A DNA stretch of 64,000 nt from assembly GCA_002104945.1 (NCBI GenBank), contig MCFH01000084.1, forward strand, positions 62,001-126,000. The letters run 5' to 3'. This document shows, in pieces, positions 6,683 to 58,348 of this stretch. Below the pieces are notes generated by a model. That model ran no database searches, was not told the DNA's origin, and worked only from the letters and a program-made list of their open reading frames with translations. The position numbers and the translations under genes are program-made. Each line of letters opens with the position of its first letter. Position 1 is the first letter of the stretch. Origin of the DNA: Piromyces finnis finn (Eukaryota > Fungi > Neocallimastigomycota).

Positions 6683-7531
6683 TCAATATTTGAAATTATG
6701 AATATATTTAACAAATTTTGGATTTAAAAGGTCAACAATTTCACTATGACCAATATCCAATTTTTCTATTTCTTTCATATCAGCATAGGAAAGTTTGAAA
6801 TCAAATATGTTAATATTTTCTTTTAATTGATAGTCATAATCAGACTTTGGAATTACAATAACACCACGTTGAATATTCCAACGAAGTGCAATTTGAGCAA
6901 CAGTTTTATTATATTTTTTACTAATTTTCGTTAATATAGTATTTTTAAAAATATTTCTTTTTCCTTCATTTAGAGGTGCCCATGCTTCCGAAATAATACC
7001 ATAATTTTCCATTGTTTTAAGATTAAGATTCTGTTGATTGAAAGGATGCATTTCAACTTGATTGATCATAGGCTTAATCTTAACAGTTTGAGTTTCGCAT
7101 ATATCAGCAATTGTGTTTGGAAAACAATTAGACATACCAATTGCTTTGCAAGCACCTTCCTTATACATATTTTCAAGTCCTCGCCATGCTCCTAAATAAT
7201 CAGCCATTGGATGATGGAGTAACATTAAATCAACGTAATTAAGACCCATTATATCAAGAGAACGCTTAGTAGCTTCTTGAGCACCTTCAAAAGAATAATC
7301 TGGCAAGAATAATTTAGTGGTAATGAAAATATCTTTACGAGGAATGCCACTTTCACGAATAGCTTCACCAATTTCCTTCTCATTCTTATAGGTTTGAGCT
7401 GTATCAATTAAACGATAGCCTTGTTTAAGTGCAGCAAGAACATAATTCTTAGTTTTATTTGGGGATACTTTAAAAACACCAAGACCAACCATTGGCATTT
7501 TTATACCATTTGCTAAAGTTTTAAATTCCAT
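6683..7531 (-). CDS. Aldo/keto reductase (2,5-diketo-D-gluconate reductase-like), intronless, bacterial-type
   Basis: GLGVF, GYRLIDTAQTYKNE (catalytic D, Y), FITTK (K), LMLLHHP (H), AIGMSN, NQVEMHP and IPKS motifs in an intact 282-aa ORF. Confidence 0.92.
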   Translation of the reverse strand: MEFKTLANGIKMPMVGLGVFKVSPNKTKNYVLAALKQGYRLIDTAQTYKNEKEIGEAIRESGIPRKDIFITTKLFLPDYSFEGAQEATKRSLDIMGLNYVDLMLLHHPMADYLGAWRGLENMYKEGACKAIGMSNCFPNTIADICETQTVKIKPMINQVEMHPFNQQNLNLKTMENYGIISEAWAPLNEGKRNIFKNTILTKISKKYNKTVAQIALRWNIQRGVIVIPKSDYDYQLKENINIFDFKLSYADMKEIEKLDIGHSEIVDLLNPKFVKYIHNFKY

Positions 7532-11666: not shown

Positions 11667-14111
11667 TTATGAATCTTCTAAATTTGTAAATTCAATAATT
11701 TTTATGTAGGAAGAATACTTTATTTGACTTTGATTTAAAAAATGAAAATCATCAACAGAATATTGTTTTTTTAACTTAAATTTATGTTCGTTAAATATCT
11801 CTATTACTCTACTAGAATTTAATCCATATTCATAATGATTTGATAAATTGGAACCAGTAATATTTACATACATTAAATTATCACATTCACGATGACTATA
11901 TCTTAATGAACTTATTAAATATAATGGGGATGATTTATCAATAATATTTACTATTTTATTATCTCTCTTGATAAAGCATCGTTTATAGGTGATTGATGGG
12001 GATTCAATATCCTCATCCATTATATTACTATCAAAAAAAATAATAATAAAAGCACCATTTATATTTTTGCCTATATTGATAAGCATATTTGTAATATCAC
12101 TATAACAAAAATCATTTAAAGCGAAAAAGCATGTTGCAACATCAAAATTTTCTTGTAATGTCACTTTTTGAATATTATTATTAATAATTTTAACTCTATT
12201 TTTTATTTCTGCTTTTGAAAGACGGCTTTTTATTTTTTTAATTTTATCTGATTTAGATTCAACACATAAAATTTTATGAAAATGTTTCCATTTGTGTATA
12301 TCACCACCATTACCTGATCCTATATCTAATAAATTTCCTCTATAATTCTTTAATACATTATTTTTTATAATATTATGATATTTACGCATTAAGACATTTG
12401 ACTCTGGATTGAAAATATCTATATTTATTTTTTGGTGAGTTGCTAATAATACACTAATAAATGTGTTTATACTATTAGATGAAGGTTTATCTTCACGAAC
12501 CTTTACCATTTTTTGAGTATCAAGATTAAATTCTATTATAAATGGTTTCTTTTTTAATTTTTCTTTACAATAATAAACACATCTTATATTAGTCGGTGTA
12601 TTATATATATACTCAACATGTTTACGATAATGATAGTAAACATTATCTTTATTGCTTTTTTTTTTATGAATATTATATAATTTGCATATTTTTTTATATT
12701 CCGATAGTGATATATTTAAATATTTTTTATCTATCTTTTTTTGTTTAGCTAAGAAATAACGACCATTAAATTCAATATCCACTGAATTTATTGTTTTTAT
12801 TTTATAAACATTAGAATTTTCGAAATATGTTGATTTACTATCAGTTATAATAATACCATCATTTGGTAAATCATTATTCATTTCTGACGCTATATATTTT
12901 TGTATATCTTGATATGATTTTCCATATTTGATATGTTTTTTCATAACTTTATTTCCAAATTTATTAAAATCAAGGGAATTTAGAATATCTATTCTTTCAC
13001 AATAAGCTTTACTTCTTAAATCAACATCATTATAAATTATATCAAACGGAATAAATTTATTATTAATATATTCACAATCCATAACAATGTGAAAATCGCT
13101 TTCTATTTCATCTACAAATTCTACAGTAAAATTTTCTGTAATACTAAACATTAAATTATTAATTATAATTAATAATTTACGAAGACCATCGGTTTTCGTT
13201 GCAATATAAAAACTATTTTTAATTAGTTTTTTGGAATTATTGAATAGTATTTCAAATGAAGGTGTTATGGGTTTTTGAAATTCGAAATTTGGCAATAGCA
13301 TGAATAAATAATCTGTATAATAAGAAGGAGAATGGATTAATTTTATCATATTGTTTATAATATTTAACATATCTAATCTGTCAATATATATATTATTCGA
13401 AAAATCGATTTCAAATTGACTCTTTTCATCATAATATGTTACATCAAAACGTACATCTTTATCCATTAAAAAAGATCTTCGCTTTTTCAATACAGGATTA
13501 TTAGAATTTATAATTTTCCATTCTAAGCATTTATTGTTTGAAAAATTATTGGATTTTATATTTATTATATTTTTAATATCTAATGGTGTTTCAATACTAA
13601 GAACAATTTTAAATATATAGTAATACCCAGTAATTAGAGTTAATTTCTTTGTATATTCAATTTTCTCATCTAGAGTATTTGTAATTTCTTTCTTTGCATT
13701 AGCTTTTATAAAATCAAATAATTTATTTTCTTTTTCAGCATTAGATTTTATATTTTCAACTTTATTATTATTTGTATTTTCTTTTTTATTGTTATTTTTA
13801 TTTGCATTTATTAAACCTTCATTATTTTCTGAATAATAATGTGAATCACAAATTATTCTATACTTTGTACTTTGATTTTCTTTCAATAAATATTCTGAAT
13901 ACAAACATGAATTACTGCTAACAAAATTTTCAACATTTATATTAGCATATTTATTGAGTAATCTAAATTCTAATTCAAAATTTATATTATTATTTAATTG
14001 AGGAATATTTTTTAAAATCTCTATTTGATTATATATGTTTTCTAATATTTCTTTTAATGATAATTGTTTTTTTAAAGATAAATAATTATCAGTAGGTATA
14101 TTTCCATTCAT
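11667..14111 (-). CDS. Trifunctional viral-type mRNA capping enzyme (RNA triphosphatase + guanylyltransferase + cap guanine-N7 methyltransferase), 814 aa
   Basis: TPase: ELEFR (13962-13976), LSIET, KKRRSF, RFDVT, FEIDF. GTase motifs: I ATKTDG (KTDG at 13185-13196), III MDCEY, IIIa PFDII, IV NDGIII, V YKIK..NSVD, VI REDK..N. MTase: MRKYHNIIK, LLDIGSGNGGDIHKW (~12300-12326), FDVATCFFALN. Confidence 0.88.
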   Translation of the reverse strand: MNGNIPTDNYLSLKKQLSLKEILENIYNQIEILKNIPQLNNNINFELEFRLLNKYANINVENFVSSNSCLYSEYLLKENQSTKYRIICDSHYYSENNEGLINANKNNNKKENTNNNKVENIKSNAEKENKLFDFIKANAKKEITNTLDEKIEYTKKLTLITGYYYIFKIVLSIETPLDIKNIINIKSNNFSNNKCLEWKIINSNNPVLKKRRSFLMDKDVRFDVTYYDEKSQFEIDFSNNIYIDRLDMLNIINNMIKLIHSPSYYTDYLFMLLPNFEFQKPITPSFEILFNNSKKLIKNSFYIATKTDGLRKLLIIINNLMFSITENFTVEFVDEIESDFHIVMDCEYINNKFIPFDIIYNDVDLRSKAYCERIDILNSLDFNKFGNKVMKKHIKYGKSYQDIQKYIASEMNNDLPNDGIIITDSKSTYFENSNVYKIKTINSVDIEFNGRYFLAKQKKIDKKYLNISLSEYKKICKLYNIHKKKSNKDNVYYHYRKHVEYIYNTPTNIRCVYYCKEKLKKKPFIIEFNLDTQKMVKVREDKPSSNSINTFISVLLATHQKINIDIFNPESNVLMRKYHNIIKNNVLKNYRGNLLDIGSGNGGDIHKWKHFHKILCVESKSDKIKKIKSRLSKAEIKNRVKIINNNIQKVTLQENFDVATCFFALNDFCYSDITNMLINIGKNINGAFIIIFFDSNIMDEDIESPSITYKRCFIKRDNKIVNIIDKSSPLYLISSLRYSHRECDNLMYVNITGSNLSNHYEYGLNSSRVIEIFNEHKFKLKKQYSVDDFHFLNQSQIKYSSYIKIIEFTNLEDS

Positions 14112-16134: not shown

Positions 16135-17126
16135 CTTTAATATTTATTTATATATAAGATATATTAATATATTCAATTATCTTTATATCTATCAAAATGT
16201 ACATAATGTGGTATTATATATATAAAAATATGGTATTAAATGTATTGATTAAAATATGTAAAAGTTTTGTGTCATTAAGAAGGAAGAAGGTACTAAAAAA
16301 AATAAACTTTTTTTTTAACTATATAATTTCAATTAGTTTATTAAATACTATAAAAAATAGATATAATTGTCAATGCAATAATTAAATGGTTTATAATACG
16401 GATAGAGAAAATTAGTGAGCTTGTCTGCACGGAGCATTATCTAGAGCATCTGAACCTTTAATTATTATTAAAATAATTATTAACATTATAATTGTTATTG
16501 ATGACACAAAATCATCAATTATTTTATGTTTATTTTTTTTTTACTTAAAAAATTATTTTTTAAAAAATTAAAAACTTTCATAAAGAAAAAAAATAAATAA
16601 TATTTTTATTTTCAATTTTTTATTATTATTATTTTATTTTTATTATATTTATTTAAAAAGTCTTAATAATAGTCTATAATTTAAGTTTTTAATTTTTTAA
16701 AAATAATTTTTTAAGAAAAAAAATAAATAATATTTTTATTTTCAATTTTTTATTATTATTATTTTATTTTTATTATATTTATTTAAAAAATCTTAATAAT
16801 AGTCTATAATTTAAAATATTACATTTTATCATTTAAATAATATTTTTTTTAAACATTACACTTTCTTTTTTTTTTTTGTTATTTACATTTATCATTATTT
16901 TCATTTATCATTATTTTCATTATTAATTTAAACTAATTTAAATGATTTAATTTTTTATTATTATTTTCTATCATTATATTCATCAAATTATTATTAATTT
17001 AAACTAATTTAAATGATTTAATTTTTTATTATTATTTTCTATCATTATATTCATCAAATTTAAACTAATTTAAATTTTAAGTTAATTTAAGCATTTTCTT
17101 AGCTGGCGTAATTATAAGCATTGCAT

Positions 17127-18566
17127 TTATGCGTCATCAGCCTTGTGGTTACGCTTTTCAATTTCCTTGTTGATTTCATCAATCTTTTCATCAGTTAATG
17201 AATAGAAGGAAATGATAATCATCATAACAATCATTAAAATAGCTGGAATAATAGCAACATTCCAACGAATACATTCCTTAGTAGAATCGGCTTGGTGCTT
17301 CATCTTGTAGAACCAACCAACGGAAGTATTGTGGATATTCATACAACAGAAAGCAGTAACGAAGTAGAAAGCAATAACACGTAATGGTCCGTTACGAATA
17401 AATTCAATCCATAAATCACTAACCTTAACATTTTCAGTTTCCTTGTCTTCCATAACAACACGTTCCTTAGACTTAACGAAACAGAATACAAGAAGTAAGA
17501 AACCAACAACAGCGTAAAGAATCATAGCAGAGAACCAAGCCTTTGAATCAGTAGTATAACCACTACCACCATCCTTAGCTTCAAGGTCTGCATCGTAGTG
17601 GAAGAAGTAAAGGAGCCATCCTGGAATAGCACCACCAAGAGCAAAACCGGCCTTGAAGAAAATACCAGTAAGAGCATTGATAATACCGGCAATACGACGA
17701 CCAGTAGTATATTCAGCATAAGAAATAACTTCTGGAACAATAGCCCACATGTAACCAGTAACAGTGGTAAGACCAGTTGACTTGATAAAGTTGGCAACTA
17801 ACATCCAGACACTCTTATCAGAGTCGGCAAGACCCATTCTACTGAAGATGTATAATAAGGCATAACCGATAATACCAATAACACCAAAGGAATAGAATAA
17901 TCCCTTCTTACCAGTGAACTTCTTAATGTATGGAACAAATGGCATGATGACAAAACCTGGAAGAGCACCAATAAAGTTGAATAAAACAACATTCCAATCA
18001 ATAGCTTGTTTGGAGAAGAGACCAGCAACAATTGGGAAACCAGTCCAGACAAATAAACCACCAATGTTAGCCATAGTCATACGAATAGAGGTAAGAACTG
18101 TAATTTCTTGAGTATCTCTAGTCATTGAAGCATTTAAGGCACCGTATGGAACGTTAGTAAGAGTGTAACACATTTGTAATAAAGTGTAGGTAATAGCGGC
18201 GTAAGTAATACTACCCTTGAAAATATCCCAGTAACAAAGAATAGCAAGAACACATAATGGGAAACCAGCTGTAACTAAATAGGAACGGTACTTACCCCAA
18301 CGTGGGTTGTGCTTATCAACAAAGGCACCAACAAATGGATCCCAAATAACATCAAGTAAACGAACAATAAGCATAAGTGCACCTGATACAGCTGTTGCTT
18401 TCTTTGAATCATTACCAATAATATATACATTAGTGTAGTAGAATGCAATAAAACCACTAACATTTTGGTAAATAAAGTTTTGTGCCATATCACCAGCACC
18501 ATAACCAATTCTGGTTAACCATGAAAGCTTGAAAAATCCATTGGCTTCGTCCTTTACTGTACTCAT
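17127..18566 (-). CDS. GPH-family (MelB/XynT-like) MFS sugar:cation symporter, copy 1, permuted helix order
   Basis: RIGYGAGDMAQN, VRLLDVIWDPFVG, WGKYRSY, NVPYGAL..SMT.D, KERV, W...PEVISYAEY.TGRR..G motifs; intronless 479 aa. Confidence 0.92.
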   Translation of the reverse strand: MSTVKDEANGFFKLSWLTRIGYGAGDMAQNFIYQNVSGFIAFYYTNVYIIGNDSKKATAVSGALMLIVRLLDVIWDPFVGAFVDKHNPRWGKYRSYLVTAGFPLCVLAILCYWDIFKGSITYAAITYTLLQMCYTLTNVPYGALNASMTRDTQEITVLTSIRMTMANIGGLFVWTGFPIVAGLFSKQAIDWNVVLFNFIGALPGFVIMPFVPYIKKFTGKKGLFYSFGVIGIIGYALLYIFSRMGLADSDKSVWMLVANFIKSTGLTTVTGYMWAIVPEVISYAEYTTGRRIAGIINALTGIFFKAGFALGGAIPGWLLYFFHYDADLEAKDGGSGYTTDSKAWFSAMILYAVVGFLLLVFCFVKSKERVVMEDKETENVKVSDLWIEFIRNGPLRVIAFYFVTAFCCMNIHNTSVGWFYKMKHQADSTKECIRWNVAIIPAILMIVMMIIISFYSLTDEKIDEINKEIEKRNHKADDA

Positions 18567-19493
18567 TTTTTTTCTTAAATTAACTTAAATGTCAATTTAT
18601 TAGTTTAAATTTTTAAATTTTTTTTTTTTATTTTATATACTACTTAAATTATTTTATTTTTTAAATATTAAGTAATTATATTACTTACTATTTATGTTTT
18701 TTCAAATTCTGTCTTCTTTTTTTGTTTTTATACATTTTAACTATTATATACATATATACAATACACAATAACAAATAACATAACAAAAAATGATATTTAT
18801 TTTTCTATATAAATTTAAATTAAAAATTGAAATATTAATATATATTGTATTTATATTAATAATAAATTTATAATAATTTTTAATTTATATTGTACTACAT
18901 ATTAAAATTTAAATATTAATATATTATATAATAGATTAAGATATTTTTAATATAGAAATTTCTAAAATAAAAAAAGTAACAATATTATAAATAAAATAAT
19001 AGGATCAAAGTATTTATGAAATATGAAATGAAATATAAATATGATATAAAACAAAAGCATAAAAATAGTTAAATATTATAACTAATTAAAAATATGCTTT
19101 AATGTTTTTTATTAATAAAGAATATGAATCTAAATAAATCTAAACTTTATTAATGATTTCATTAGATTTAAAATATTAATAATGAAAAAAAATTGATCAG
19201 TAAATCTATGTATTAAGTAATAATATGCAATATGATATTAAAGATAATAATAAACTAGCATATATAATTTAAGATTAAATCTAATTATTGTTTTATATAT
19301 CCTTATATTATTTTATATTATTTTTTTGTGTCATCTGTCAAAAAATTATTTCTACCTACTATCTACAACATTAATTAAATAACAATACTCTAGATAAAAT
19401 AAGCTTTTTCATATATAAATATACAATACTTATAAATATAAGTATTGTATATTTAGAGTGCCTATATTTTAATAATATTTCTTAAATTTAACT

Positions 19494-20340: not shown

Positions 20341-21780
20341 ATGAGTACAGTAAAGGACGAAGCCAATGGATTTTTCAAGCTTTCATGGTTAACCAGAATT
20401 GGTTATGGTGCTGGTGATATGGCACAAAACTTTATTTACCAAAATGTTAGTGGTTTTATTGCATTCTACTACACTAATGTATATATTATTGGTAATGATT
20501 CAAAGAAAGCAACAGCTGTATCAGGTGCACTTATGCTTATTGTTCGTTTACTTGATGTTATTTGGGATCCATTTGTTGGTGCCTTTGTTGATAAGCACAA
20601 CCCACGTTGGGGTAAGTACCGTTCCTATTTAGTTACAGCTGGTTTCCCATTATGTGTTCTTGCTATTCTTTGTTACTGGGATATTTTCAAGGGTAGTATT
20701 ACTTACGCCGCTATTACCTACACTTTATTACAAATGTGTTACACTCTTACTAACGTTCCATACGGTGCCTTAAATGCTTCAATGACTAGAGATACTCAAG
20801 AAATTACAGTTCTTACCTCTATTCGTATGACTATGGCTAACATTGGTGGTTTATTTGTCTGGACTGGTTTCCCAATTGTTGCTGGTCTCTTCTCCAAACA
20901 AGCTATTGATTGGAATGTTGTTTTATTCAACTTTATTGGTGCTCTTCCAGGTTTTGTCATCATGCCATTTGTTCCATACATTAAGAAGTTCACTGGTAAG
21001 AAGGGATTATTCTATTCCTTTGGTGTTATTGGTATTATCGGTTATGCCTTATTATACATCTTCAGTAGAATGGGTCTTGCCGACTCTGATAAGAGTGTCT
21101 GGATGTTAGTTGCCAACTTTATCAAGTCAACTGGTCTTACCACTGTTACTGGTTACATGTGGGCTATTGTTCCAGAAGTTATTTCTTATGCTGAATATAC
21201 TACTGGTCGTCGTATTGCCGGTATTATCAATGCTCTTACTGGTATTTTCTTCAAGGCCGGTTTTGCTCTTGGTGGTGCTATTCCAGGATGGCTCCTTTAC
21301 TTCTTCCACTACGATGCAGACCTTGAAGCTAAGGATGGTGGTAGTGGTTATACTACTGATTCAAAGGCTTGGTTCTCTGCTATGATTCTTTACGCTGTTG
21401 TTGGTTTCTTACTTCTTGTATTCTGTTTCGTTAAGTCTAAGGAACGTGTTGTTATGGAAGACAAGGAAACTGAAAATGTTAAGGTTAGTGATTTATGGAT
21501 TGAATTTATTCGTAACGGACCATTACGTGTTATTGCTTTCTACTTCGTTACTGCTTTCTGTTGTATGAATATCCACAATACTTCCGTTGGTTGGTTCTAC
21601 AAGATGAAGCACCAAGCCGATTCTACTAAGGAATGTATTCGTTGGAATGTTGCTATTATTCCAGCTATTTTAATGATTGTTATGATGATTATCATTTCCT
21701 TCTATTCATTAACTGATGAAAAGATTGATGAAATCAACAAGGAAATTGAAAAGCGTAACCACAAGGCTGATGACGCATAA
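20341..21780 (+). CDS. GPH-family MFS sugar:cation symporter, copy 2
   Basis: Translation identical to copy 1. Confidence 0.92.
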   Translation: MSTVKDEANGFFKLSWLTRIGYGAGDMAQNFIYQNVSGFIAFYYTNVYIIGNDSKKATAVSGALMLIVRLLDVIWDPFVGAFVDKHNPRWGKYRSYLVTAGFPLCVLAILCYWDIFKGSITYAAITYTLLQMCYTLTNVPYGALNASMTRDTQEITVLTSIRMTMANIGGLFVWTGFPIVAGLFSKQAIDWNVVLFNFIGALPGFVIMPFVPYIKKFTGKKGLFYSFGVIGIIGYALLYIFSRMGLADSDKSVWMLVANFIKSTGLTTVTGYMWAIVPEVISYAEYTTGRRIAGIINALTGIFFKAGFALGGAIPGWLLYFFHYDADLEAKDGGSGYTTDSKAWFSAMILYAVVGFLLLVFCFVKSKERVVMEDKETENVKVSDLWIEFIRNGPLRVIAFYFVTAFCCMNIHNTSVGWFYKMKHQADSTKECIRWNVAIIPAILMIVMMIIISFYSLTDEKIDEINKEIEKRNHKADDA

Positions 21781-22394
21781 ATGCAATGCTTATAATTACG
21801 CCAGCTAAGAAAATGCTTAAATTAACTTAAAATTTAAATTAGTTTAAATTTGATTAATAATAAAATAGTAAGCAATCCTAAATTAATTTAGTTTAAAATT
21901 ATGGATTATAATAATTAATAATCCGAAAGTGTAAATACAAATATATATTTCATATAAATTAAAAATTATTGAAATTATATTCTTAATTAAGTAATAATAC
22001 ATATAAAATAATAATGAATTTTATATAATAATAATAAATTATTTGAAATTCTTAAAAATAATGTATTGAAATAGAAAAAATAGAAATAATTCTATTAATA
22101 TAATTTTAATAAAGATAAAAATTAAAATATATATAGGTATTTTTTGGTTATGTTGTAAATTAAATGCTTTTGTTTAATTATAATTTTTTTTAAGTGGATT
22201 TAAAATTGAGTATTTAATAATATGGCTGTATGTGAGAAATGTATTTTTTTAAAAGGCTTAATAATTAGGTTTTTAGATATGATCGATTTGTGTTTTAAGA
22301 GTTTTTTATTTAAGTAATAATATTTGGAAATGTCTTATTAATCTTTAATAAATAAATATTTGGAATGTTCCTTTTCTTTGAAATGGAACTCTGA

Positions 22395-22984: not shown

Positions 22985-24520
22985 TGTTTTTTATAAAATT
23001 AGTTAATAAGTTATATAATTAGTTAATTAAGTTAGTTATTACCTCTCTATACGAGTTAATAACTAAATAAAGTTTTATAAAAAATAATAAAAGAAAGAAA
23101 ATAAATATTATAACACAAAAATAAATATAACTATATATAAATATTATTATGAAATAAATTTACTTAAATAATTGTTTTTAATTATATCTTTTATTTATTT
23201 AGTATAATTATAATACATTAATTATTATTTTAGCTATTAATTTACTTTAATACTAACGCTAAAGTATTTAACGTTAGTTTTAACTATACTATTTAACTAT
23301 ATTAGTTTATTTTCTTTACCACTTGATTGGGTAAAGCAAATAAACTTCCTATTTAATTAATAACCATTAATATATGGTTATACATATATTTAGCCAATAA
23401 ATGGTGTCCAGAATATATGGTTTCAATTGAAATATTTGTGGGCAAACTTATGGCCACAAATATTTCTTACAGTGCCCCCCTAAGGAGAAAACCTAGGTAG
23501 GGTTTTGGACACTAACCATGAATTCCTGGTAGCATTTATCTTGAAATTCCTTGAGTAGCTTATCATAGTGGGAGTTCTTGTCGATGATATCAGCATCAAC
23601 CCACTCTTGTCTAAAGTCACTAAAGGTAGCTAAGTATTGGTAGTTATCCTTCTTTCTTCGGGCATTCATGATTTTGATGATTTTCTGGCAGCCCACTGGT
23701 GCAGGTGTTAGTTCTTCAGGTTTGTTATGGTAGGGTTCAAGTTCACTGATATGAAACACTGGGTAGACGTTGGGGAAAGGTGACTTGCTGATATCCAACC
23801 GGTAGTTAAGTTTGCTTTCATCAATTCCAATAACCTTGAAAGGACCGTACTTTCTTGTTTGTAGCTTGTAGAAGGGAAGAGGGTTGTAATTTTCTGGTTT
23901 TCTTAACCACACCAAATCCATGAGCCTAATTTTAGGGTAGTTAAGTTCTCTCCTATGGTCCAAGTGGTCCAAGAACCGTGTTCTTGATATGCCCAGCATG
24001 TGCTTTAAGTTGCCTAAGTTGTGAGCAAAGCTATCTAATACAGGTGCTTCACCAAGTGAGTGGACAAGTTCTGAGTCTTGAGGGTTCATATGTACCTGGT
24101 AGTTATACAAAGCTAGGAATGGGGACTGCTTGGTAGAACTGTGTACTGCATTATTATAACAGAACTCAGCTAAGTACAAGTACTTCAACCATTCGTCGTC
24201 ATCAAAGGTCTTCACAAAGCATCTAAGGTACATACTTACGTAGGAGTTGTTACGTTCTACCTGACCAACCGTTTCATGATGGCCGGTGGTAGCAAGGTTT
24301 ACTTCTACGCCAAAGAACCCCATAATGTCCTTCCACAACTTACTAGTGAACTGGGCACCACGATCCGTAGTAACCGATTTGGGACAACCATGTAACTTGA
24401 ATACATGTTGTAAGTATGCTAAGGCTATTTCTTTAGCAGTAGGCATACTCCTAAACCCCACTAAGTGTATCATTTTGGTTAACTTATCGCTACAAACCAT
24501 GATACAACCTGTAAAGATAT
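22985..24520 (-). mobile_element. Second Ty3/gypsy remnant, 5'-truncated: integrase core + chromodomain (ORF 23493-24500), PPT and probable 3' LTR (~22985-23471)
   Basis: TDRGAQFTS, VGQVERNN, YGPFKV, YPVFHISELEPY and a chromo-like tail. On the minus strand TAGGGGGGCAC is followed by TGTAAG at 23471. The distal LTR end is approximate. Confidence 0.85.
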
Positions 24521-26059: not shown

Positions 26060-28446
26060 TTAATTTATGATAGTACTGCGAATCATTGTGACAGTTTTAG
26101 TAATAGTTTTAATTTCATTTGTTGCGGTTGCAGTAATTGTAACTAAATCCTCTTCTTCTTCAGAATCACTTTCATCAATAGCTGTTACTTCTTCTTCAAC
26201 TTCAAGAGCTTCATCATCAGAAATATATTCTACATCAATTGAAGTTGGAGTTGGTTCAGTTGAAGAATTAGTTTGAGTTTCAATAAATGAATCAGAATAA
26301 GTCTCAGTTGGTGATTCAGTTGATGTTTCGACAATAGTTTCATTCGAAGCTTCACTTGGTGATTCAGTTGGTGTTTCAAATACAACTTCAGTATAATTAT
26401 AATCAATTGATGTTTCAGTTGGCATTTCATATGAATAATAAGTAGAATACCAACCATCAAATCCAAAATCATAGTTATAATTAACATTAAGTTCTTCAAC
26501 AACTGGATATTCATAATTCTCATCTAAATAAGTTGAATCACATTCTAATGAATAGTAATCACAAGTATATCTATATCTCATAAGAATCCAATACTTTAAT
26601 CCATAGGATTCCATATCTGAATAGCCATTAGTAAATTCAGAATAAGCATCCCATTGTTCTAAAGAAAAGTTTCCATCAATACCACCTGTATTAAAATGAC
26701 CAGGATAATTACCATTAGCATCTGGTGTTTTATCTAATATAACATATGGTTTAATGTACTCTTTAATTTCATCAATATGAGAATAAAGTGTTGATGGATT
26801 AAAAACTTTACTAATAACTTCACTTAATATTTTTTCAAATCTAGCTGAATCATTGAAAATTAGTACTTCTATAAGATGAATATTTCCATAAGCGGCTGTA
26901 ATTGTAATTGGAGCATTGAAAAACATACTTACTTGTCCGAAATCATGATCAAAATCATGAGATAAATAAATCCATTTACCATTAGGTTGTTTGTACATAT
27001 AGTAATTATGAGTATTTTGAATATGGTCATAGGCACCTGTTAAATAATCAATGGCCATTTCATATAAAAAATGATCAATTTCGAAAATATCTTCAAGATC
27101 TGCGGCTGATTTAGCATTTTCAATTGCTGTTAAAAATTCAATCCATTCAGTATCATTATCAATTTCTTCATTTTCATTAATACATCCATAAGAATATTCT
27201 GGAAGTAAATCAATCATGCTATCACACTTATATAAATTTTTTGCATTCTTTTCACCATAAACTTCTTCAATCCATGATAATTTATAATCATCATTAAATG
27301 TATATAATCCCATGAATTCATCATTAATGTAAAGTTGTACATAAGTAGATGAAACTGATTTTAATCCTAAACGATTATGAATATCTGAAATTAATTTTGT
27401 TCTCATAATAGTTGGATCATTTAAATCAGCGCGAAGTTTAAATTGACTACGTCCATGAAGATCCTTATTACCTCTGATTTTTAAATTAAAACCTGGTTTT
27501 TGGAAGAATCGAGAGTATGCACCACCTAATTTAAAAGTTACTTTATCAAATGAATTTTGTTCTCTACAAAAGACATATGTATACAATATATATTTAAAAG
27601 TAATAATTAATAACAATATTGTATTAATAATATTAATATAAATCTAATGAATATTATTACTATTGGTAATAATAAATTTATTAATTACTTACCCATTAAT
27701 TTCGAAAATCATAGTAGCATTTTTAGTTTTGAATGATTTCATAACTTCTTCTTCTTCTTCTTCATTAATACTAATAATAGATCTAATATCAGATGGGATA
27801 CTTGCATTTTGTATTATTTCAAGTAATTCCATATCATTATGATTGTCTGACATTTTTAAACCATCAAGTACTTCTGAAATTCTTATCATATTGAAATCTT
27901 CATTACTTTCTAAAATTTCATAATATACTTCATAAAAATCTTCCATACTAACTATACTAATATTTTCTAAATTAAAGTCGAATCCATTTATTACTTCTAT
28001 TGCATCAAAAGTAGGAAAACCATCTTCTCCTATTTTTAATTCTGGAAGAATTTCATCAAAATTATAGCCAGGGTAATATTCTTTGAAATTTACTTTTTTT
28101 AAACCAAAAATTACATTATATAAAGTAGCTTTAATCATATTAATAGCAGAAGAAGCAGTTAATTCATAGTTAACCTTCATATATGAACTTTCTTTCAATT
28201 TAATAAATTCCTCATCAGGCATATATATTTTTAAATTTGGCATTGCATTATCTGTAAGTTCAAATAATTCTGCTCTTTTCCCTTTATCAATGAAAGTAGA
28301 TATAGCCAAAGTACTGTAAACTATATATAATTCATTTCAAAAATATATTTAGTTAGTCAATATATCAATTACCTTTTTTATTATTTACTACTTATTTAAT
28401 ACTAACCGCAACAACATAATAAAATGAATAAATTTTTAATTAACAT
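26060..28446 (-). CDS. Secreted CotH-family kinase-domain protein, 3 exons (28446-28407, 28320-27693, 27563-26060), with an S/T/E-rich C-terminal tail
   Basis: Spliced N-terminus MLIKNLFILLCCCVYSTLA looks like a signal peptide. CotH motifs KLGGAYSR, FKLRAD..DPT, YVQLYINDEFMGLY, HNYYMY..PNGKW..L.HDFD. GT-AG introns in frame; intron 1 has a CTAAC branch site. Confidence 0.88.
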
Positions 28447-30699: not shown

Positions 30700-33695
30700 A
30701 CCTAATAAATTAAATGAAATAAAAAAAAAAGAAGTAACATCAGGTAGGATAGTGTGGTGTCCACTAAACTCTCCCATGAGTTCATAATGCTTTCATTCGA
30801 AGAAATACTAACATTGAACCCTGTGTACGGAACACTGAGAATGTTCCTTTGCCATATCGGTACGACGTCGGCGCTCTTGATTATGTTAGGTGTCTTATCA
30901 AAAAGTAGCTTCATAGAGCTACTAATGATAGGGATTGTTTTAATAAGAAAAGCTGAGAGACCCTCTACCTATGGAACATGAGACCCCTGATGAACTGTAA
31001 AGCTGTTCATTCAAGTATCTTTGTTCCGCCTTATCGATTTGTAGCTCATCATAAGCTAAAGTTCCATCAAGAAGGAACGTAAAAATATAGTTATAAATTG
31101 TTTTTTCTTATTTCCATTTCAGGGAGTAAGTATGTGATGAATTGATTCTTATATTCATCGAATACAAATAATCCAGGTAATTCCTAAATTTAAGTGAGGT
31201 TTTTTGAGACCGATATGCATTAGGCGATTTGAATTAAGGAATTTGTTGTTAGTATATCTGATGGCTTTACTTCCATTATTTAGGCTACTATTATTCCAAT
31301 AATATTCTCTAATATCTTTAGTACTTTTAATATTTATTTTCATAAGCTTCTTATGTAGTGAACAAGATTCTTTGGCCCAAGAGTAATGAGACATGGGAGG
31401 AATAGATCAGACGAGATCTTTAATAATACAATTTGATTTTCTCCATTTAACAAAGCATTTCACTTGTTGCGCAGCACAAATACCTGAAAGGGTAGGAATC
31501 TTCATATCTCTTGTAAGAGCATACAGACTAATAAATGAATTTCGTTCAAAAACAAAATCTTTGTTATTAAAACTTTTATTGTGAAAGCTATTGACACTCC
31601 ATAAAACAGCAGTATTGATAAGAGATTGGACTCTTCTAGTTCTATTTTCGTTGGAACCAGGTAAAGGAGCATAATAAGAGACTTTGCTTAAAATATAGGA
31701 ATGAATTACTATATTTTTTAAGCCAATAGGAACACTATTGTTAGTGAGGAAGCTCTTAAAAGAGAATAAGGATTTCTGAACTTTTTTGTACATATTAGAC
31801 AGAATAGGAATCAGAGAGAGATCTTCTCGAATGGGATTCCAAAATAAGTATAGCAAGAAACCTTTGGAATCGAGTACATACCGATGTAAAATGTTGGGTC
31901 GACATAACTAGGGGATCTATTAAAGTTTATAGGTTTAACAACAATAGTTGCACATTTATTTATTCCAAAAGACATTTCATTTAAATTAGCCTAATCAAGG
32001 ACTAGATTGAGCATCTTTTGAAGGTTCTTCTTGCTAAGAGCAATCAGAACAATGTCATCAGCGAAAAGACCACCACAGCAACATTTATTTCCTAAGCTAA
32101 CACCAAACCTTTCACATTTATTTAAAATATCATTGATGAAGAGATTAAATAGAATAGGAGAAAGAGGACATTCTTGTCTTACACCACGATTGATAGGGAA
32201 TTCATTAGAAAGCATATCCAAGAAACGTGAACGAGCTTTTGAGGTAGAGTAGAAATTATTGAGAAAATCAAAACACTTACCACGTATACCTAATTTATAT
32301 AGCTTTGTAAGGATATTAAAAATAGGAACTGAGTCGTATGCTTTTTTAAGGTCAAGAAAAGCAACATAAGTGGTTTTTCCTTTAAATTTTCTTCTTTGAC
32401 AGATTTCTCTAATGGAAATAAATAAGCTAATACATTCTTCTTTATTGCGAAATCCAAATTGCTCAGGTCTTATAAAATTATGAGAAAGAGCATATTTTGA
32501 AATTCTATTAATTACAATTTTTGAAATGATTTTAAGATCTACGTTGATGAGAGAAATACCACGATAATTATTACAGTCTGAAAGATCGCCTTTCTTTGGA
32601 ATAGAAACAATGGAAGTAGAATTCCATTTCAAAGGAAAGGATCCATTCCAGATTTTATTAAAAATTAATTTAAGACAATTACCAGCAGACTTATGTTCTT
32701 TTTCCAATTCTTCGTTACAAAAGAAAGCTTTGAAGAATTCAATTGGTATACCATCGGGACCTGGAGCCTTATTATTCTTCATTGATAGAACAGTATTTCT
32801 AATTTCCTCAATAGAGATGGGATCATTAATATTCCATGCTATTTGATTGATATGATTGAATTGGAAGGCTCTTTCCCAGTAACCCCGATTTAAGCTATGA
32901 TTTGTAACATCAGATGCAAGATTTTCATAATGTTCAGCCTAACGTTTTAATTGTTCTTGAGGAGTAAATAAATCCTTGCCATTCTTGTCCTTAAGAGTTG
33001 AAACATGAAAGGATGAATAACTTGGTTTGGCAGGTTTTTTAAGGCCTTTTCAACCTTGTCTAATGCTTTTATCAATAAAATGTTTACCGATAGAAACAAT
33101 ATTAGCTTTACAGAGATTGGATCTGAATTTACTCTTAACCTTTTTGATGGTATTACATAAATTTTGGTATATGGAGAACTGGTTAAGATAATTATCCATG
33201 TCAGCGCAATCTGAAAGGGATTTAATATTTTTGTAAGCCAGATGTTTTTCATGTAATAAGTTTTTGATGTATTGAGGGCAATGGAATGCTGGACCTTTTA
33301 AATCTGCAGTCACAATGGCTTTTATATCTTTACCTAAAGTTTTGGAAGTATCTAAAAATTTTGAAACCATATCGTCAGCCGATAGGCTATCGCAATTAGC
33401 TTCAAGCTTAGAAGCTAGAACAGCAAAACGATTACTAGTAAGAATGTCAGAACACTTTGTGTTACAGATATGACTTGACCACTTAAAGGTCTTCTTAGGC
33501 TTTTTGAAACCATCAGAAGTCTTTTTTAAAAGACACAAGGATCAGAAACATCGGGAAAAACTTCGCAAACTGAAGATTTGTTTATGTGTTCTGTCATAGC
33601 TTTGTTGTATATAATATGGTCAATGCATGAAGATTTAGATCCTTTTTCCCAAGTAAAATTATTACCAGTTAACTCAGCCATAGTCCAATCAAGGA
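30700..33695 (-). mobile_element. Degenerate LINE (family 2): end of APE domain, RT and C-terminal region, broken by frameshifts; 5' part lost at the family-1 junction
   Basis: KAPGPDGIP, YRGISLIN, EQFGFR, FLDLKKAYDSV, GVRQECPLSPILFNLFINDI and FADDIV. APE tail TWEKGSKSSCIDHII at ~33610-33660. Confidence 0.88.
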
Positions 33696-35549
33696 TTTTT
33701 TTTTTTTTTTTTTTTTTTTAACGGCATCAAATATTTTTAAACTTTATTATTAATTAAATTAAAATTATAATACATGTTATATAAAAAATTAAAAATTAAA
33801 ATAAAAATAAAATATTGTTTAAATAAACACAAATGAATAAAAATTGGGTATAATGTATTCTAGTAATTTTAATTAAAGTAAGAAAGCCACTATTATACTA
33901 AAGTATAATAATTGTATTTGACTTCCAATGGGACACCGAGCCAAAGATCAAAATTTTATCATGGGACAAAATTATGATCTCCATTGGTTGCGCTGGCCCT
34001 CCTGGCCTGTCTTACTGTTTCTTCAGCATTGACGCTCTTGGATGTTGCTTCAAACCTTTTGAACATTGACCATTGCTGGCCAATAGCAAAAGGCATGATT
34101 TTGGTTAGAAGTTCCGCGGTTACCGTCAAGAATGGTGTTCCTTCGTTAGTACCAGATTGAATCTGACGCTTACAAAGTTCTTTCCATTCCCTTGAATTGT
34201 AATTAATATTGTTAAAACTTCTTCCCCCAAAAAAGAATTTAAATATTTTACTGCACAGACTAGAATAATCATACACACTAATATTCACCGGATTATTAGA
34301 ACTATTACTATCATTAACTAAATTACTATCTAAATTAGAATTATTATCTTCACTATTGCTATCATTACTAGTATTATTATTTCTATAACTACTATTGTTA
34401 TTATTACTATTTCTATTACTACTATTGTTATTATTACTATTGTTACTATTACTATTGTTATTACTACTATTGTTACTATTACTATTAATGTTATTACTAT
34501 CTCTACTGATATTATCAATTTCATTATTATTGATAGGACTATTGGAATTACGTTGACTGAAAAAATTTAATAGCTGGACTATAGAATCATAATGTTTAAT
34601 ACGGATATCTCTAAATGTTGGACAATCTAATAACCAATGTTTAATACTTTGATCTCCACACTTGCAACATGGACAGTAGTTAGGACAAACTGGATCAACA
34701 AATTTGGCAGCTTTGGCAACTCTAGCATCCAACTTGTATCCGCTTCTTGCTTTCAATAGCCAGTAGAAGCCATAGGCAAACTCTGGGTACTCATAACATA
34801 ATTTAATAAAATCTTTAGTTTCAATAAATTTATTATCATCATAATATTGCGCTTTGATTGAATTCCCTTTGAGATCTTTCCAATAAAAGCTTTTAACTGC
34901 TTTAACATCTCCATGCTTCTTTAGTTTTTTATCAAGTGTCCTACTTGATTTGCACCACGTGTATTTTCTAAATTTAGGAATGTAATTGACAAGGTATGAG
35001 ATAATACAATTTGAGTTTTTCCATTTGTTAAAACATCTAACCTGAGCTAATGCACATTTGGCTGACAATGGAGGAATATTCAAATCTTTTGAAATAGAGT
35101 ATAAAGATATAAACGATACAGCTTTATGAACTCCAGCAACCCATCGTATTCCTTTGTTAACATGCTTCTGAGCAATCCTAGACCTAGCTTTGTTGGATCC
35201 AAGTAATGGTGCAAAGTATGAAACTCTGCTAATCACTTGTGAGTTAAGTACTAGCTTTTTGAAGGGAATAGGAATATTAGGATTTCTTAAGAATTTACTG
35301 ACTGAGAAAAGTCCTTTCAAATCCTTGTTATTAAGAGCTTTAATTACTGGTTTAAGGGACAAATTCTTATCAAATGGAACACCAAGATAAGTATAACAAT
35401 CAGTAGTTGGAATGGGTTGTCCTGCTAAGTAAAATGTTGGATCTCTCTTGTTCTGATTTTTTTTTTCTACTCTCTCAGTACCATGAGCATGAGTAGAGCC
35501 CCTTGAGAAACTTCATTAATTAAATAATTGAAATCACGTTCCCAAGGGG
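33696..35549 (-). mobile_element. LINE family 1 copy C: poly(A), 3' UTR, 3' ~1.5 kb of ORF, internally deleted and joined to a 5' monomer
   Basis: Poly-T followed by AACGGCATC at 33696; ORF 33959-35362 matches the C-terminus of the full copies. At ~35460 the ORF joins the monomer at a shared TTTCTA. Confidence 0.88.
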
Positions 35550-36007
35550 TTTTTTTTTTTTTTTTTTTTTTTTTAACGGCATCAAATATTATAAACTTTA
35601 TTATTAATTTAATTAAAATTATAATACATGTAATAAAAAATTAAAAAATAAAAATAAAAATAAAAAAAATATGTTTAAATAAACACAAATGAATAAAAAT
35701 TGGGTATAATGTATTCTAGTAATTTTAATTAAAGTAAGAAAGCCACTATCATACTAAAGTATAATAATTGTATTTGACTTCCAATGGGACACCGAGCCAA
35801 AGATCAAAATTTTGTCATGGAACAAAATTATGATCTCCATTGGTTGCGCTGGCCCTCCTGGCCTGTCTTACTGTTTCTTCAGCATTGACGCTCTTGGATG
35901 TTGCTTCAAACCTTTTGAACATTGTCCATTGCTGGCCAATAGCAAAAGGCATGATTTTGGTTAGAAGTTCCGCGGTTACCGTCAAGAATGGTGTTCCTTC
36001 GTTAGTA
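35550..36007 (-). mobile_element. LINE family 1 copy E, severely 5'-truncated (~460 bp), TSD CCCAAGGGG
   Basis: Poly-T + 3' UTR + last ~70 codons; the same 9-mer flanks it at 35541-35549 and 36008-36016. Confidence 0.88.
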
Positions 36008-36284
36008 CCCAAGGGGGTAGATTTTTTTTTTTTTTTTTTTTTTAACGGCATCAAATATTTTAAACTTTATTATTAATTTAATTAAAATTATAATACATGT
36101 AATATAAAAAATTAAAAATTAAAATAAAAATAAAAAAAGCATGTTTAAATAAACACAAATGAATAAAATTTGGGTATAATGTATTCTAGTAATTTTAATT
36201 AAAGTAAGAAAGCCACTATCATACTAAAGTATAATAATTGTATTTGACTTCCAATGGGACACCGAGCCAAAGATCAAAATTTTA

Positions 36285-41643: not shown

Positions 41644-41681
<38 letters not shown>

Positions 41682-42460: not shown

Positions 42461-42464
<4 letters not shown>

Positions 42465-42526
<62 letters not shown>

Positions 42527-48249: not shown

Positions 48250-48341
48250 AATATTATTACTATCTCTACTGATATAGCATGAGTAGACCCCCTTGAGAAA
48301 CTACATTTATTAAATAAATGAAGGCACGTTCCCAAGAGGGA
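47887..48341 (-). repeat. Tandem ~124-bp hairpin-rich monomers at the LINE 5' end (also at 41402-41646 and 35462-35549)
   Basis: CTCAGTACCATGAGC at 47981 and 48105 (period 124); a 68-bp half-monomer duplication at 48182. Confidence 0.85.
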
Positions 48342-48974: not shown

Positions 48975-50414
48975 TTATGCGTCATCAGCCTTGTGGTTAC
49001 GCTTTTCAATTTCCTTGTTGATTTCATCAATCTTTTCATCAGTTAATGAATAGAAGGAAATGATAATCATCATAACAATCATTAAAATAGCTGGAATAAT
49101 AGCAACATTCCAACGAATACATTCCTTAGTAGAATCGGCTTGGTGCTTCATCTTATAGAACCAACCAACGGAAGTATTGTGGATATTCATACAACAGAAA
49201 GCAGTAACGAAGTAGAAAGCAATAACACGTAATGGTCCGTTACGAATAAATTCAATCCATAAATCACTAACCTTAACATTTTCAGTTTCCTTGTCTTCCA
49301 TAACAACACGTTCCTTAGACTTAACGAAACAGAATACAAGAAGTAAGAAACCAACAACAGCGTAAAGAATCATAGCAGAGAACCAAGCCTTTGAATTAGT
49401 AGTGTAACCACTACCACCATCATTAGCTTCAAGGTCTGCATCGTAGTGGAAGAAGTAAAGGAGCCATCCTGGAATAGCACCACCAAGAGCAAAACCGGCC
49501 TTGAAGAAAATACCAGTAAGAGCATTGATAATACCGGCAATACGACGACCAGTAGTATATTCAGCATAAGAAATAACTTCTGGAACAATAGCCCACATGT
49601 AACCAGTAACAGTGGTAAGACCAGTTGACTTGATAAAGTTGGCAACTAACATCCAGACACTCTTATCAGAGTCGGCAAGACCCATTCTACTGAAGATGTA
49701 TAATAAGGCATAACCGATAATACCAATAACACCAAAGGAATAGAATAATCCCTTCTTACCAGTGAACTTCTTAATGTATGGAACAAATGGCATGATGACA
49801 AAACCTGGAAGAGCACCAATAAAGTTGAATAAAACAACATTCCAATCAATAGCTTGTTTGGAGAAGAGACCAGCAACAATTGGGAAACCAGTCCAGACAA
49901 ATAAACCACCAATGTTAGCCATAGTCATACGAATAGAGGTAAGAACTGTAATTTCTTGAGTATCTCTAGTCATTGAAGCATTTAAGGCACCGTATGGAAC
50001 GTTAGTAAGAGTGTAACACATTTGTAATAAAGTGTAGGTAATAGCGGCGTAAGTAATACTACCCTTGAAAATATCCCAGTAACAAAGAATAGCAAGAACA
50101 CATAATGGGAAACCAGCTGTAACTAAATAGGAACGGTACTTACCCCAACGTGGGTTGTGCTTATCAACAAAGGCACCAACAAATGGATCCCAAATAACAT
50201 CAAGTAAACGAACAACAAGCATAAGTGCACCTGATACAGCTGTTGCCTTCTTTGAATCATTACCAATAATATATACATTAGTGTAGTAGAATGCAATGAA
50301 ACCACTAACATTTTGGTAAATAAAGTTTTGTGCCATATCACCAGCACCATAACCAATTCTGGTTAACCATGAAAGCTTGAAAAAGCCATTGGCTTCGTCC
50401 TTTACTGTACTCAT
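48975..50414 (-). CDS. GPH-family MFS sugar:cation symporter, copy 3
   Basis: 479 aa; differs from copy 1 by a few residues (LIVRL>LVVRL, EAKDG>EANDG, TTDSK>TTNSK). Confidence 0.92.
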   Translation of the reverse strand: MSTVKDEANGFFKLSWLTRIGYGAGDMAQNFIYQNVSGFIAFYYTNVYIIGNDSKKATAVSGALMLVVRLLDVIWDPFVGAFVDKHNPRWGKYRSYLVTAGFPLCVLAILCYWDIFKGSITYAAITYTLLQMCYTLTNVPYGALNASMTRDTQEITVLTSIRMTMANIGGLFVWTGFPIVAGLFSKQAIDWNVVLFNFIGALPGFVIMPFVPYIKKFTGKKGLFYSFGVIGIIGYALLYIFSRMGLADSDKSVWMLVANFIKSTGLTTVTGYMWAIVPEVISYAEYTTGRRIAGIINALTGIFFKAGFALGGAIPGWLLYFFHYDADLEANDGGSGYTTNSKAWFSAMILYAVVGFLLLVFCFVKSKERVVMEDKETENVKVSDLWIEFIRNGPLRVIAFYFVTAFCCMNIHNTSVGWFYKMKHQADSTKECIRWNVAIIPAILMIVMMIIISFYSLTDEKIDEINKEIEKRNHKADDA

Positions 50415-56908: not shown

Positions 56909-58348
56909 TTATGCGTCATCAGCCTTGTGGTTACGCTTTTCAATTTCCTTGTTGATTTCATCAATCTTTTCATCAGTTAATGAATAGAAGGAAATGATAA
57001 TCATCATAACAATCATTAAAATAGCTGGAATAATAGCAACATTCCAACGAATACATTCCTTAGTAGAATCGGCTTGGTGCTTCATCTTGTAGAACCAACC
57101 AACGGAAGTATTGTGGATATTCATACAACAGAAAGCAGTAACGAAGTAGAAAGCAATAACACGTAATGGTCCGTTACGAATAAATTCAATCCATAAATCA
57201 CTAACCTTAACATTTTCAGTTTCCTTGTCTTCCATAACAACACGTTCCTTAGACTTAACGAAACAGAATACAAGAAGTAAGAAACCAACAACAGCGTAAA
57301 GAATCATAGCAGAGAACCAAGCCTTTGAATCAGTAGTATAACCACTACCACCATCCTTAGCTTCAAGGTCTGCATCGTAGTGGAAGAAGTAAAGGAGCCA
57401 TCCTGGAATAGCACCACCAAGAGCAAAACCGGCCTTGAAGAAAATACCAGTAAGAGCATTGATAATACCGGCAATACGACGACCAGTAGTATATTCAGCA
57501 TAAGAAATAACTTCTGGAACAATAGCCCACATGTAACCAGTAACAGTGGTAAGACCAGTTGACTTGATAAAGTTGGCAACTAACATCCAGACGCTCTTAT
57601 CAGAGTCGGCAAGACCCATTCTACTGAAGATGTATAATAAGGCATAACCGATAATACCAATGACACCAAAGGAATAGAATAATCCCTTCTTACCAGTGAA
57701 CTTCTTAATGTATGGAACAAATGGCATGATGACAAAACCTGGAAGAGCACCAATAAAGTTGAATAAAACAACATTCCAATCAATAGCTTGTTTGGAGAAG
57801 AGACCAGCAACAATTGGGAAACCAGTCCAGACAAATAAACCACCAATGTTAGCCATAGTCATACGAATAGAGGTAAGAACTGTAATTTCTTGAGTATCTC
57901 TAGTCATTGAAGCATTTAAGGCACCGTATGGAACGTTAGTAAGAGTGTAACACATTTGTAATAAAGTGTAGGTAATAGCGGCGTAAGTAATACTACCCTT
58001 GAAAATATCCCAGTAACAAAGAATAGCAAGAACACATAATGGGAAACCAGCTGTTACTAAATAGGAACGGTACTTACCCCAACGTGGGTTGTGCTTATCA
58101 ACAAAGGCACCAACAAATGGATCCCAAATAACATCAAGTAAACGAACAATAAGCATAAGTGCACCTGATACAGCTGTTGCCTTCTTTGAATCATTACCAA
58201 TAATATATACATTAGTGTAGTAGAATGCAATGAAACCACTAACATTTTGGTAAATAAAGTTTTGTGCCATATCACCAGCACCATAACCAATTCTGGTTAA
58301 CCATGAAAGCTTGAAAAAGCCATTGGCTTCGTCCTTTACTGTACTCAT
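56909..58348 (-). CDS. GPH-family MFS sugar:cation symporter, copy 4
   Basis: Protein identical to copies 1 and 2; a few synonymous changes. Confidence 0.92.
   Translation of the reverse strand: MSTVKDEANGFFKLSWLTRIGYGAGDMAQNFIYQNVSGFIAFYYTNVYIIGNDSKKATAVSGALMLIVRLLDVIWDPFVGAFVDKHNPRWGKYRSYLVTAGFPLCVLAILCYWDIFKGSITYAAITYTLLQMCYTLTNVPYGALNASMTRDTQEITVLTSIRMTMANIGGLFVWTGFPIVAGLFSKQAIDWNVVLFNFIGALPGFVIMPFVPYIKKFTGKKGLFYSFGVIGIIGYALLYIFSRMGLADSDKSVWMLVANFIKSTGLTTVTGYMWAIVPEVISYAEYTTGRRIAGIINALTGIFFKAGFALGGAIPGWLLYFFHYDADLEAKDGGSGYTTDSKAWFSAMILYAVVGFLLLVFCFVKSKERVVMEDKETENVKVSDLWIEFIRNGPLRVIAFYFVTAFCCMNIHNTSVGWFYKMKHQADSTKECIRWNVAIIPAILMIVMMIIISFYSLTDEKIDEINKEIEKRNHKADDA

Follow-up and report, generated by a model that had tools for sequence, protein, structure and literature searches.

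A GPH transporter with a re-ordered set of transmembrane helices in the gut fungus Piromyces finnis and its relatives in rumen and gut bacteria

A stretch of 64,000 nucleotides from the gut fungus Piromyces finnis finn (Neocallimastigomycota; assembly GCA_002104945.1, contig MCFH01000084.1, positions 62,001 to 126,000 of the forward strand), called the window here, harbours four copies of a gene encoding a transporter of 479 amino acids (aa) with twelve predicted transmembrane helices (TM). The protein belongs by descent to the GPH/MFS_2 family within the major facilitator superfamily (MFS), but it is a new variant and not an ordinary member, as its segments follow each other in the order TM1-5, TM8-11, TM6-loop-TM7, TM12. 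A colinear order from TM1 to TM12 with a single central loop is not found in it. This arrangement was proposed in the original prediction, and all sequence segments quoted there are present in the open reading frame (ORF). The genes, the four blocks of the protein and the neighbouring features are listed in Table 1.

Table 1. Features of the window, with the blocks of the transporter given for copy 1
Feature	Position	Strand	Remarks
Permuted GPH transporter gene, copy 1	20341..21780	+	479 aa, intronless, stop codon included
Block A, TM1-5 (aa 13-189)	20377..20907	+	colinear with canonical GPH ~3-180
Block B, homologue of canonical TM8-11 (aa 190-337)	20908..21351	+	directly after TM5
Block C, displaced TM6-central cytoplasmic loop-TM7 (aa 338-424)	21352..21612	+	between TM11 and TM12
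Block D, TM12 and C-terminal tail (aa 425-476)	21613..21768	+	HMM domain map
Transporter gene, copy 2	17127..18566	-	head-to-head with copy 1; 100% aa identity
Transporter gene, copy 3	48975..50414	-	99.4% aa identity
Transporter gene, copy 4	56909..58348	-	100% aa identity
Aldo/keto reductase	6683-7531	-	
ORF with methyltransferase domain	11667-14111	-	814 aa
CotH kinase-family ORF	26060-27616	-	
FGGY-family sugar kinase	62469-63953	-	xylulokinase-like
Nested LINE-like reverse-transcriptase ORFs and Ty3-type integrase fragments	31991-48353; 379-1827; 23493-24500		two ORFs of ~1507 aa; around the transporter copies

The profiles PF13347 (MFS_2) of Pfam and TIGR00792 (gph) of NCBIfam match the protein with 234.2 bits (cutoff 27) and 269.4 bits (cutoff 231.35), respectively, and in both cases the match is split into four stretches. 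In the comparison with PDB sequences, phmmer aligned residues 14-177 with MelB 3-162 and residues 196-324 with MelB 272-396, skipping TM6-7 of MelB; the latter match is weak and not significant alone. A family hidden Markov model (HMM) was built from 60 family members and searched against six canonical GPH transporters of E. coli K-12 (MelB, YicJ, YagG, UidB, YihO, and YihP). Canonical positions ~3-180 correspond to family positions 13-190, ~270-400 (TM8-11) to 190-330, and ~400-450 (TM12) to 420-473, and the canonical segment ~180-262 (TM6-loop-TM7) is displaced to family positions 338-424. This displaced piece is significant by itself in five of the six canonical proteins, with independent E-values (iE) from 9e-8 to 6e-5. 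MelB gave two pieces only, which are non-colinear too. The reverse search, with a canonical HMM against the query, returned the same four non-colinear domains, and block C matches canonical profile positions 180-252 with an iE of 7.8e-9. A colinear full-length alignment to canonical GPH proteins does not exist.

When the blocks were put back in silico in the order A (1-189), C (338-424), B (190-337), D (425-479), the query matched as one domain covering profile positions 4-449 and residues 13-476, with 257 bits as against 221 for the native order, and three control block orders were still fragmented. The two-helix unit of TM6, central loop and TM7 hence lies after the four-helix unit TM8-11, and the region of about 21334-21609 first proposed for it agrees with block C. 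It contains the motif run AWF...KERVVM...VKVSDLW.EF.RNGPLR..., and a short new periplasmic linker forms the junction between TM5 and TM8. The in/out topology is kept, with twelve predicted helices and an exchange of even-numbered blocks. It could be argued that nothing was permuted, and that residues 338-424 of a divergent colinear 12-TM protein resemble TM6-loop-TM7 by MFS pseudo-symmetry or by chance motifs (KER, N.PL). The halves of MFS proteins are internally homologous and may give weak off-diagonal matches, and the insignificant phmmer match of residues 196-324 would fit with this view. Nonetheless, the block map is non-colinear in both directions and only the restored order gives an end-to-end domain, and chance or pseudo-symmetry is therefore excluded.

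A tblastn search in the window detected the four copies (20341-21777 on the plus strand; 18566-17130, 50414-48978 and 58348-56912 on the minus strand) with 99.4-100% aa identity. As the original prediction pointed out, all of them share the block order, which speaks against an assembly error. The copies sit in DNA repeats of 1.5-2.1 kb with 94-99.9% identity. Copies 1 and 2 lie head-to-head as an inverted duplication (17045-18748 / 21863-20159; 99.9% DNA identity, ~1.4 kb apart), and the remaining copies share 97-99% DNA identity over 1.5-2.1 kb. Because of this near-identity, either the amplification in the fungus is recent or the copies are under gene conversion. Regarding transcription, a contig of 1,479 nt from a metatranscriptomic run covers the ORF colinearly (window 20351-21782), and in three small runs of one organism a depth of 1e4-1e5 is restricted to the ORF and short flanks resembling untranslated regions.

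The re-ordered form is distributed family-wide. A word-index search revealed thousands of full-length colinear homologs, among them Prevotella, Segatella and Bacteroidaceae proteins with 55-57% identity over 97-100% of the length, which agrees with the mention of similarly ordered Prevotella proteins in the original prediction. Many homologs belong to gut fungi, the nearest named relatives being from Piromyces and Anaeromyces. In species-representative genomes at least 587 loci were found; the order was checked in the best 80, and all of these are colinear with the query. Permuted loci are present in Prevotella, Segatella copri, Hallella mizrahii, Bacteroidaceae, Muribaculaceae, Paludibacteraceae, Alistipes, and Marinilabiliaceae, and also in Succinivibrio dextrinosolvens DSM 3072 and Kiritimatiellia. 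At loci L020, L025, L075, L084, L036, L041, and L047 the permuted gene occurs in Succinivibrio/Succinatimonas (Gammaproteobacteria), Kiritimatiellia, and bins labelled Lachnospiraceae, Oscillospiraceae, and Waltera; these loci point to transfer between phyla in rumen and gut or, for the Firmicutes bins, to contamination of the bins.

Could the order be an artefact of assembly or gene calling in the fungal genome or in metagenome bins? The window is rich in repeats and in AT, many of the bacterial homologs were taken from metagenome-assembled genomes, and the chimeric 14-TM sequences described below show that assemblies of this gene family can err. However, the order is carried by four independent copies in the window and by the colinear RNA contig, it recurs in a complete chromosome of Segatella copri and in the isolates Hallella mizrahii and S. 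dextrinosolvens DSM 3072, and clusters of permuted homologs number hundreds of members. An artefact is thus practically inconceivable.

In bacteria, the permuted gene is located in the core xylan cluster, composed of a hybrid two-component system (HTCS) regulator, an esterase, the GPH transporter, and glycoside hydrolases (GH) of families GH10 and GH43. The S. copri gene is flanked by a GDSL esterase and GH10-GH43, and the HTCS regulator and GH67 adjoin; in Succinivibrio the gene lies ahead of a GH43 gene. The transporter of this cluster is known as XynD in P. bryantii, BACOVA_04388 in B. ovatus, and NQ544_12690 in S. copri (PMC8002723, PMC11784079). It is regarded as the inner-membrane importer of xylan polysaccharide utilisation loci and is assumed to take up from the periplasm either short (arabino)xylo-oligosaccharides or monosaccharides (PMC8002723, PMC11784079). 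The permuted gene shares genomic context and proposed role with these transporters, and the examined S. copri locus is permuted. The papers treat XynD-type transporters as ordinary MFS proteins and leave helix order unmentioned (PMC8002723, PMC11784079); from species-level homologs, the named proteins would have the order of the corresponding loci.

Transporters of canonical order were found in the same position. We retrieved 226 proteins with a 562-aa query sequence and sorted them by block-specific HMMs; 154 are permuted, 68 have the canonical order and four are 'double-C' proteins. Canonical-order clusters are abundant in Prevotella (P0121, P0123, P0136, and others) and, block for block, share 70-83% identity with permuted Prevotella proteins, so that the blocks can be assigned without ambiguity. 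Their operon comprises GPH, GH10, GH43, a sigma factor, GH67, and HTCS, with the transporter in the slot of the permuted gene. Length, operon slot and functional residues are the same in both forms, which differ only in the place of the TM6-loop-TM7 unit of ~87-95 aa and in three linkers. Since they occupy the same slot, the two are positional orthologs and the rearrangement took place in situ.

AlphaFold models of the permuted protein and of P0123, the canonical-order ortholog used as control, were compared with known structures. The best matches of the permuted model are MelB and MFSD2A. Against MelB, it reached a Z score of 23.0 with 332 residues aligned for 8t60 (control, 39.5 with 414) and 23.1 with 354 for 7l16 (control, 30.9 with 439). 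For MFSD2A, the values were 22.2 with 353 residues for 8d2t (control, 41.4 with 440) and 22.9 with 344 for 7mjs (control, 41.0 with 425). Foldseek TM scores were 0.80-0.90 for the control and ~0.5 for the permuted protein. Sequential alignment over the whole chain fails for the predicted structure of the permuted protein and succeeds for the canonical-order ortholog. In sequential alignments the permuted model falls short of the control by 79-87 residues, and block C has 87 aa; the shortfall equals the size of the block, as would be expected of a sequential aligner if the fold is the same and one two-helix unit is out of order. In view of this agreement, of the block map and of the closeness of the canonical-order orthologs, a colinear protein mistaken for a permuted one is extremely improbable.

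It is most likely that the moved helices keep the usual places of TM6 and TM7 in the MFS fold. The chain would then cross between the N- and C-domains three times instead of once. From TM5 (N) it would pass to TM8 (C) through an outside linker of ~8-10 residues, and from TM11 (C) to TM6 (N) through an outside linker of ~15-20 residues. TM6, synthesised after TM11, would lead to TM7 by the retained cytoplasmic loop, and TM7 would join TM12 within the C domain. With crossings on the outside and on the cytoplasmic side, the two domains would be tethered on both faces of the membrane; we infer the extra extracellular tethers from the block order and the standard MFS topology.

With regard to function, the conserved cation- and sugar-site residues of MelB, R52, D55, D59, Y120, T121, W342, R363, and K377, correspond to R69, D72, D76, Y134, T135, W274, R291, and K305 of the window protein. 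MelB D19 and D124 are replaced by Asn, as in UidB and YicJ, a pattern of the UidB/YicJ pentoside-glucuronide branch. The conserved residues and the xylan-cluster context point to a xyloside or xylo-oligosaccharide:H+ symporter as the most likely function. GH10 or GH43 genes adjoining the fungal copies were not found in the window, which is expected because the fungus is a eukaryotic recipient of horizontal gene transfer. The fungal copies could be seen as decaying relics of such transfer, pseudogenes devoid of transport function, as they lie among retrotransposons in a repeat-rich region and no xylanase genes were seen next to them. However, the four ORFs of 479 codons are intact, catalytic residues are retained, a large fungal clade has full-length proteins, the ORF is covered by the metatranscriptome contig and by transcript-like depth, and an FGGY sugar kinase is present in the window. 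Decay of the fungal copies is therefore very unlikely.

Two phylogenetic analyses were performed. The first tree, calculated with FastTree from the 226 sequences and rooted on the E. coli GPH proteins, placed the fungi at the base and a canonical-order Prevotella clade (n=64) deep inside the permuted clade, and a tree of block C had the same shape. This picture was set aside, since its root connects two long branches, namely an outgroup of 35% identity and the AT-biased fungal branch. The second tree was a quick IQ-TREE search (LG+C20) of 69 re-ordered sequences, with the sampling widened by 24 closer canonical outgroups from a 50%-representative library, including a Dysgonamonadaceae protein (P0227, 49%) and Leuconostoc XynT (P0234). 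The same library supplied divergent permuted members from Salinivirgaceae (P0228), Kiritimatiellae (P0222), and JGI transcripts (P0226, P0243). In this tree every permuted sequence except P0228 falls in one clade (SH-aLRT 100), which branches off from canonical-order Prevotella proteins, themselves an unresolved grade, and the canonical outgroups lie below. The fungal sequences form one clade (100) nested among bacterial permuted sequences. In the free tree P0228 does not group with the main permuted clade, a placement flagged as a meeting of long branches. A constraint uniting all permuted sequences including P0228 had a higher likelihood, with a p-value of 0.72 in the approximately unbiased test (p-AU).

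The best reading of the trees is a single change from canonical to permuted order in Bacteroidales, followed by probable spread among bacteria of rumen and gut that belong to several phyla; the ancestor of a large clade of gut fungi would then have received the gene. The fungal genes are intronless, and transfer of genes from rumen bacteria to Neocallimastigomycota is well documented. A donor among rumen Bacteroidetes had been suggested in the original prediction, and both the colinear full-length Prevotella/Bacteroidaceae homologs and the nested position of the fungal clade are in agreement with it. The opposite polarity, in which the permuted order would be ancestral in the Bacteroidales/fungal clade and the canonical-order Prevotella transporters a reversion, would be supported by the E. 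coli-rooted tree and the tree of block C. Nevertheless, with closer outgroups and a site-heterogeneous model the permuted sequences form a clade apart from the canonical-order grade, with the fungi inside that clade, and a second rearrangement that restored exactly the ancestral order would be unlikely from the outset. We consider this reversed polarity improbable.

The rearrangement would be a single in-place event in the gene for the inner-membrane transporter of the Bacteroidales core xylan cluster (XynD / BACOVA_04388 type), starting from an ancestor of canonical order whose descendants fill that operon slot in other Prevotella. Swapping the neighbouring blocks C and B amounts to permuting the internal segment TM6-11 circularly, and such permutations classically come about by duplication followed by loss. 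The probable step here would be a duplication of block C into the TM11-TM12 loop and a later deletion of the original copy. In all architectures the C unit starts with x[L/T]P-[KE][DA]S.AWF, and the TM5-TM8 linker of the 12-TM permuted proteins reads …E-TLP-IEM-ALFMG. This linker retains 'xLP', the opening of the C unit, and 'xE[M/L]', the end of the C-to-B linker, that is only 3+2 residues. The footprint suggests that the TM11-TM12 loop had already received a second copy when the original one was deleted.

Four proteins of 561-565 aa with 14 TM (P0027, P0072 at L089:239-1924, P0081, and P0183) have the architecture A-C-B-C-D, with the TM6-loop-TM7 block at both positions. They were considered as evolutionary intermediates and rejected, as P0027, P0072 and P0081 are mosaics with a crossover in the middle of block B. 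P0027 is a clean chimera whose parents are among the sampled sequences: up to the middle of block B it matches canonical-order P0121 with 100% identity, and beyond that point it shares 93-100% identity with permuted proteins. P0072 and P0081 are 100% identical to each other up to the middle of block B and then diverge. All four are singleton clusters on metagenome contigs of 2.8-6.2 kb. Most simply, these sequences are assembly chimeras, or possibly rare recombinants, of co-occurring canonical-order and permuted genes, joined within the central part of block B, which hardly varies between the two gene types.

A reciprocal or non-homologous recombination of the cut-and-paste or inversion-like type, passing through no duplicated intermediate, or more than one origin, for instance in Salinivirgaceae, would also account for the permuted genes. 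The lack of a reliable 14-TM intermediate and the position of P0228 in the free tree are in line with this. The 'xLP' motif, found where the block lay originally as well as where it lies now, suggests instead that both boundaries once coexisted, and the single-origin tree has the higher likelihood; the placement of P0228 may be due to long branches. Such a history is less probable than duplication and deletion in one lineage, yet it deserves to be taken seriously. Apart from this, four short proteins of the representative library (P0237, P0245, P0250, and P0344; 167-275 aa) have block A almost directly fused to block D, and in P0237 the start of TM6 is joined to the TM11-12 loop. These relatives may be deletion derivatives, pseudogenes or misassemblies of a recombination-prone gene.

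Altogether, it is highly probable that the window gene encodes a functional GPH symporter in which one block was permuted once in Bacteroidales, and which spread, passed horizontally to gut fungi, and was amplified and transcribed there. Several points weigh against this explanation. The duplication-deletion route has no trustworthy intermediate, with three of the four 14-TM sequences being mosaics, and the 'LP' footprint of three residues is weak evidence by itself. The FastTree topology with E. coli root contradicts the preferred polarity, and the IQ-TREE result comes from a quick search that left the canonical-order grade unresolved. Homology and the alignment shortfall are the basis on which the moved helices are placed, and AlphaFold may be biased towards the MFS fold. 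The probable substrate in the fungus is extrapolated from bacteria, where GH10/GH43 adjoin the gene, and a functionally characterised permuted member was not found in the literature.

The canonical GPH:cation symporters (TC 2.A.2; MelB, UidB/GusB, YicJ, YagG, and XylP/XynT) share with the window protein homology above the cut-offs, 12 TM, the MFS fold and the charged and aromatic functional residues, but their segments run from 1 to 12 with one inter-domain crossing. To our knowledge, every described MFS member has TM1-12 connectivity with a single inter-domain loop. A description of a permuted, rearranged or non-canonical MFS or GPH order, or of XynD topology, was not found in the literature outside subscription journals. 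Madej, Kaback and co-workers reportedly put forward in 2013 a 'mix-and-match' hypothesis for MFS helix triplets, in which helices are re-ordered in the sequence while the fold is kept, as here. In contrast to the deep, inferred three-helix repeats of that hypothesis, the present event is recent and unambiguous at 70-83% identity, and it concerns a two-helix unit including the central loop. The block exchange also resembles permutation by duplication in soluble proteins, being a circular permutation by the same classical route, although a trustworthy duplicated intermediate was not among the sequences retrieved here. This work contributes a set of canonical-order positional orthologs, a structural control, a rooted phylogeny with a single origin, the junction footprint, expression data, and the recognition of the double-block sequences as mosaics.

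A natural, abundant and evidently functional family thus breaks the TM1-12 rule of one of the largest transporter superfamilies. The family provides direct and recent evidence for the evolutionary re-ordering of MFS helix blocks, which had been argued only from very distant comparisons. Close orthologs of standard order in the same operon make the effect of helix order on insertion, folding and alternating access testable with little confounding divergence. It is conceivable, though doubtful, that the re-wired connectivity is not neutral, and that the two extra periplasmic tethers and the late insertion of TM6 alter rocker-switch energetics or folding and stability in an advantageous way. If so, the advantage would explain the spread through most gut and rumen Bacteroidales and the repeated crossing into other phyla and fungi, and the permuted/canonical pair at 70-83% identity would become the first system linking MFS helix order experimentally to mechanism and co-translational folding. 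For annotation, sequential aligners and domain annotators under-score or split such proteins, as seen in the low Foldseek score and the four Pfam pieces. The fungal and bacterial genes are furthermore candidate importers of xylosides or xylo-oligosaccharides for the engineering of pentose-using yeast.

The GC content of the window is very low (13-33%). Retroelements, CotH, an aldo/keto reductase and an FGGY kinase flank the transporter copies, and the window also contains Ty3-like and LINE elements, including the nested reverse-transcriptase ORFs around the copies. The ORF of the CotH kinase family is of a kind common in gut fungi, and a further ORF carries a methyltransferase domain. The FGGY kinase and the aldo/keto reductase, which share the window with the four transporter copies, may form a pentose-utilisation neighbourhood.

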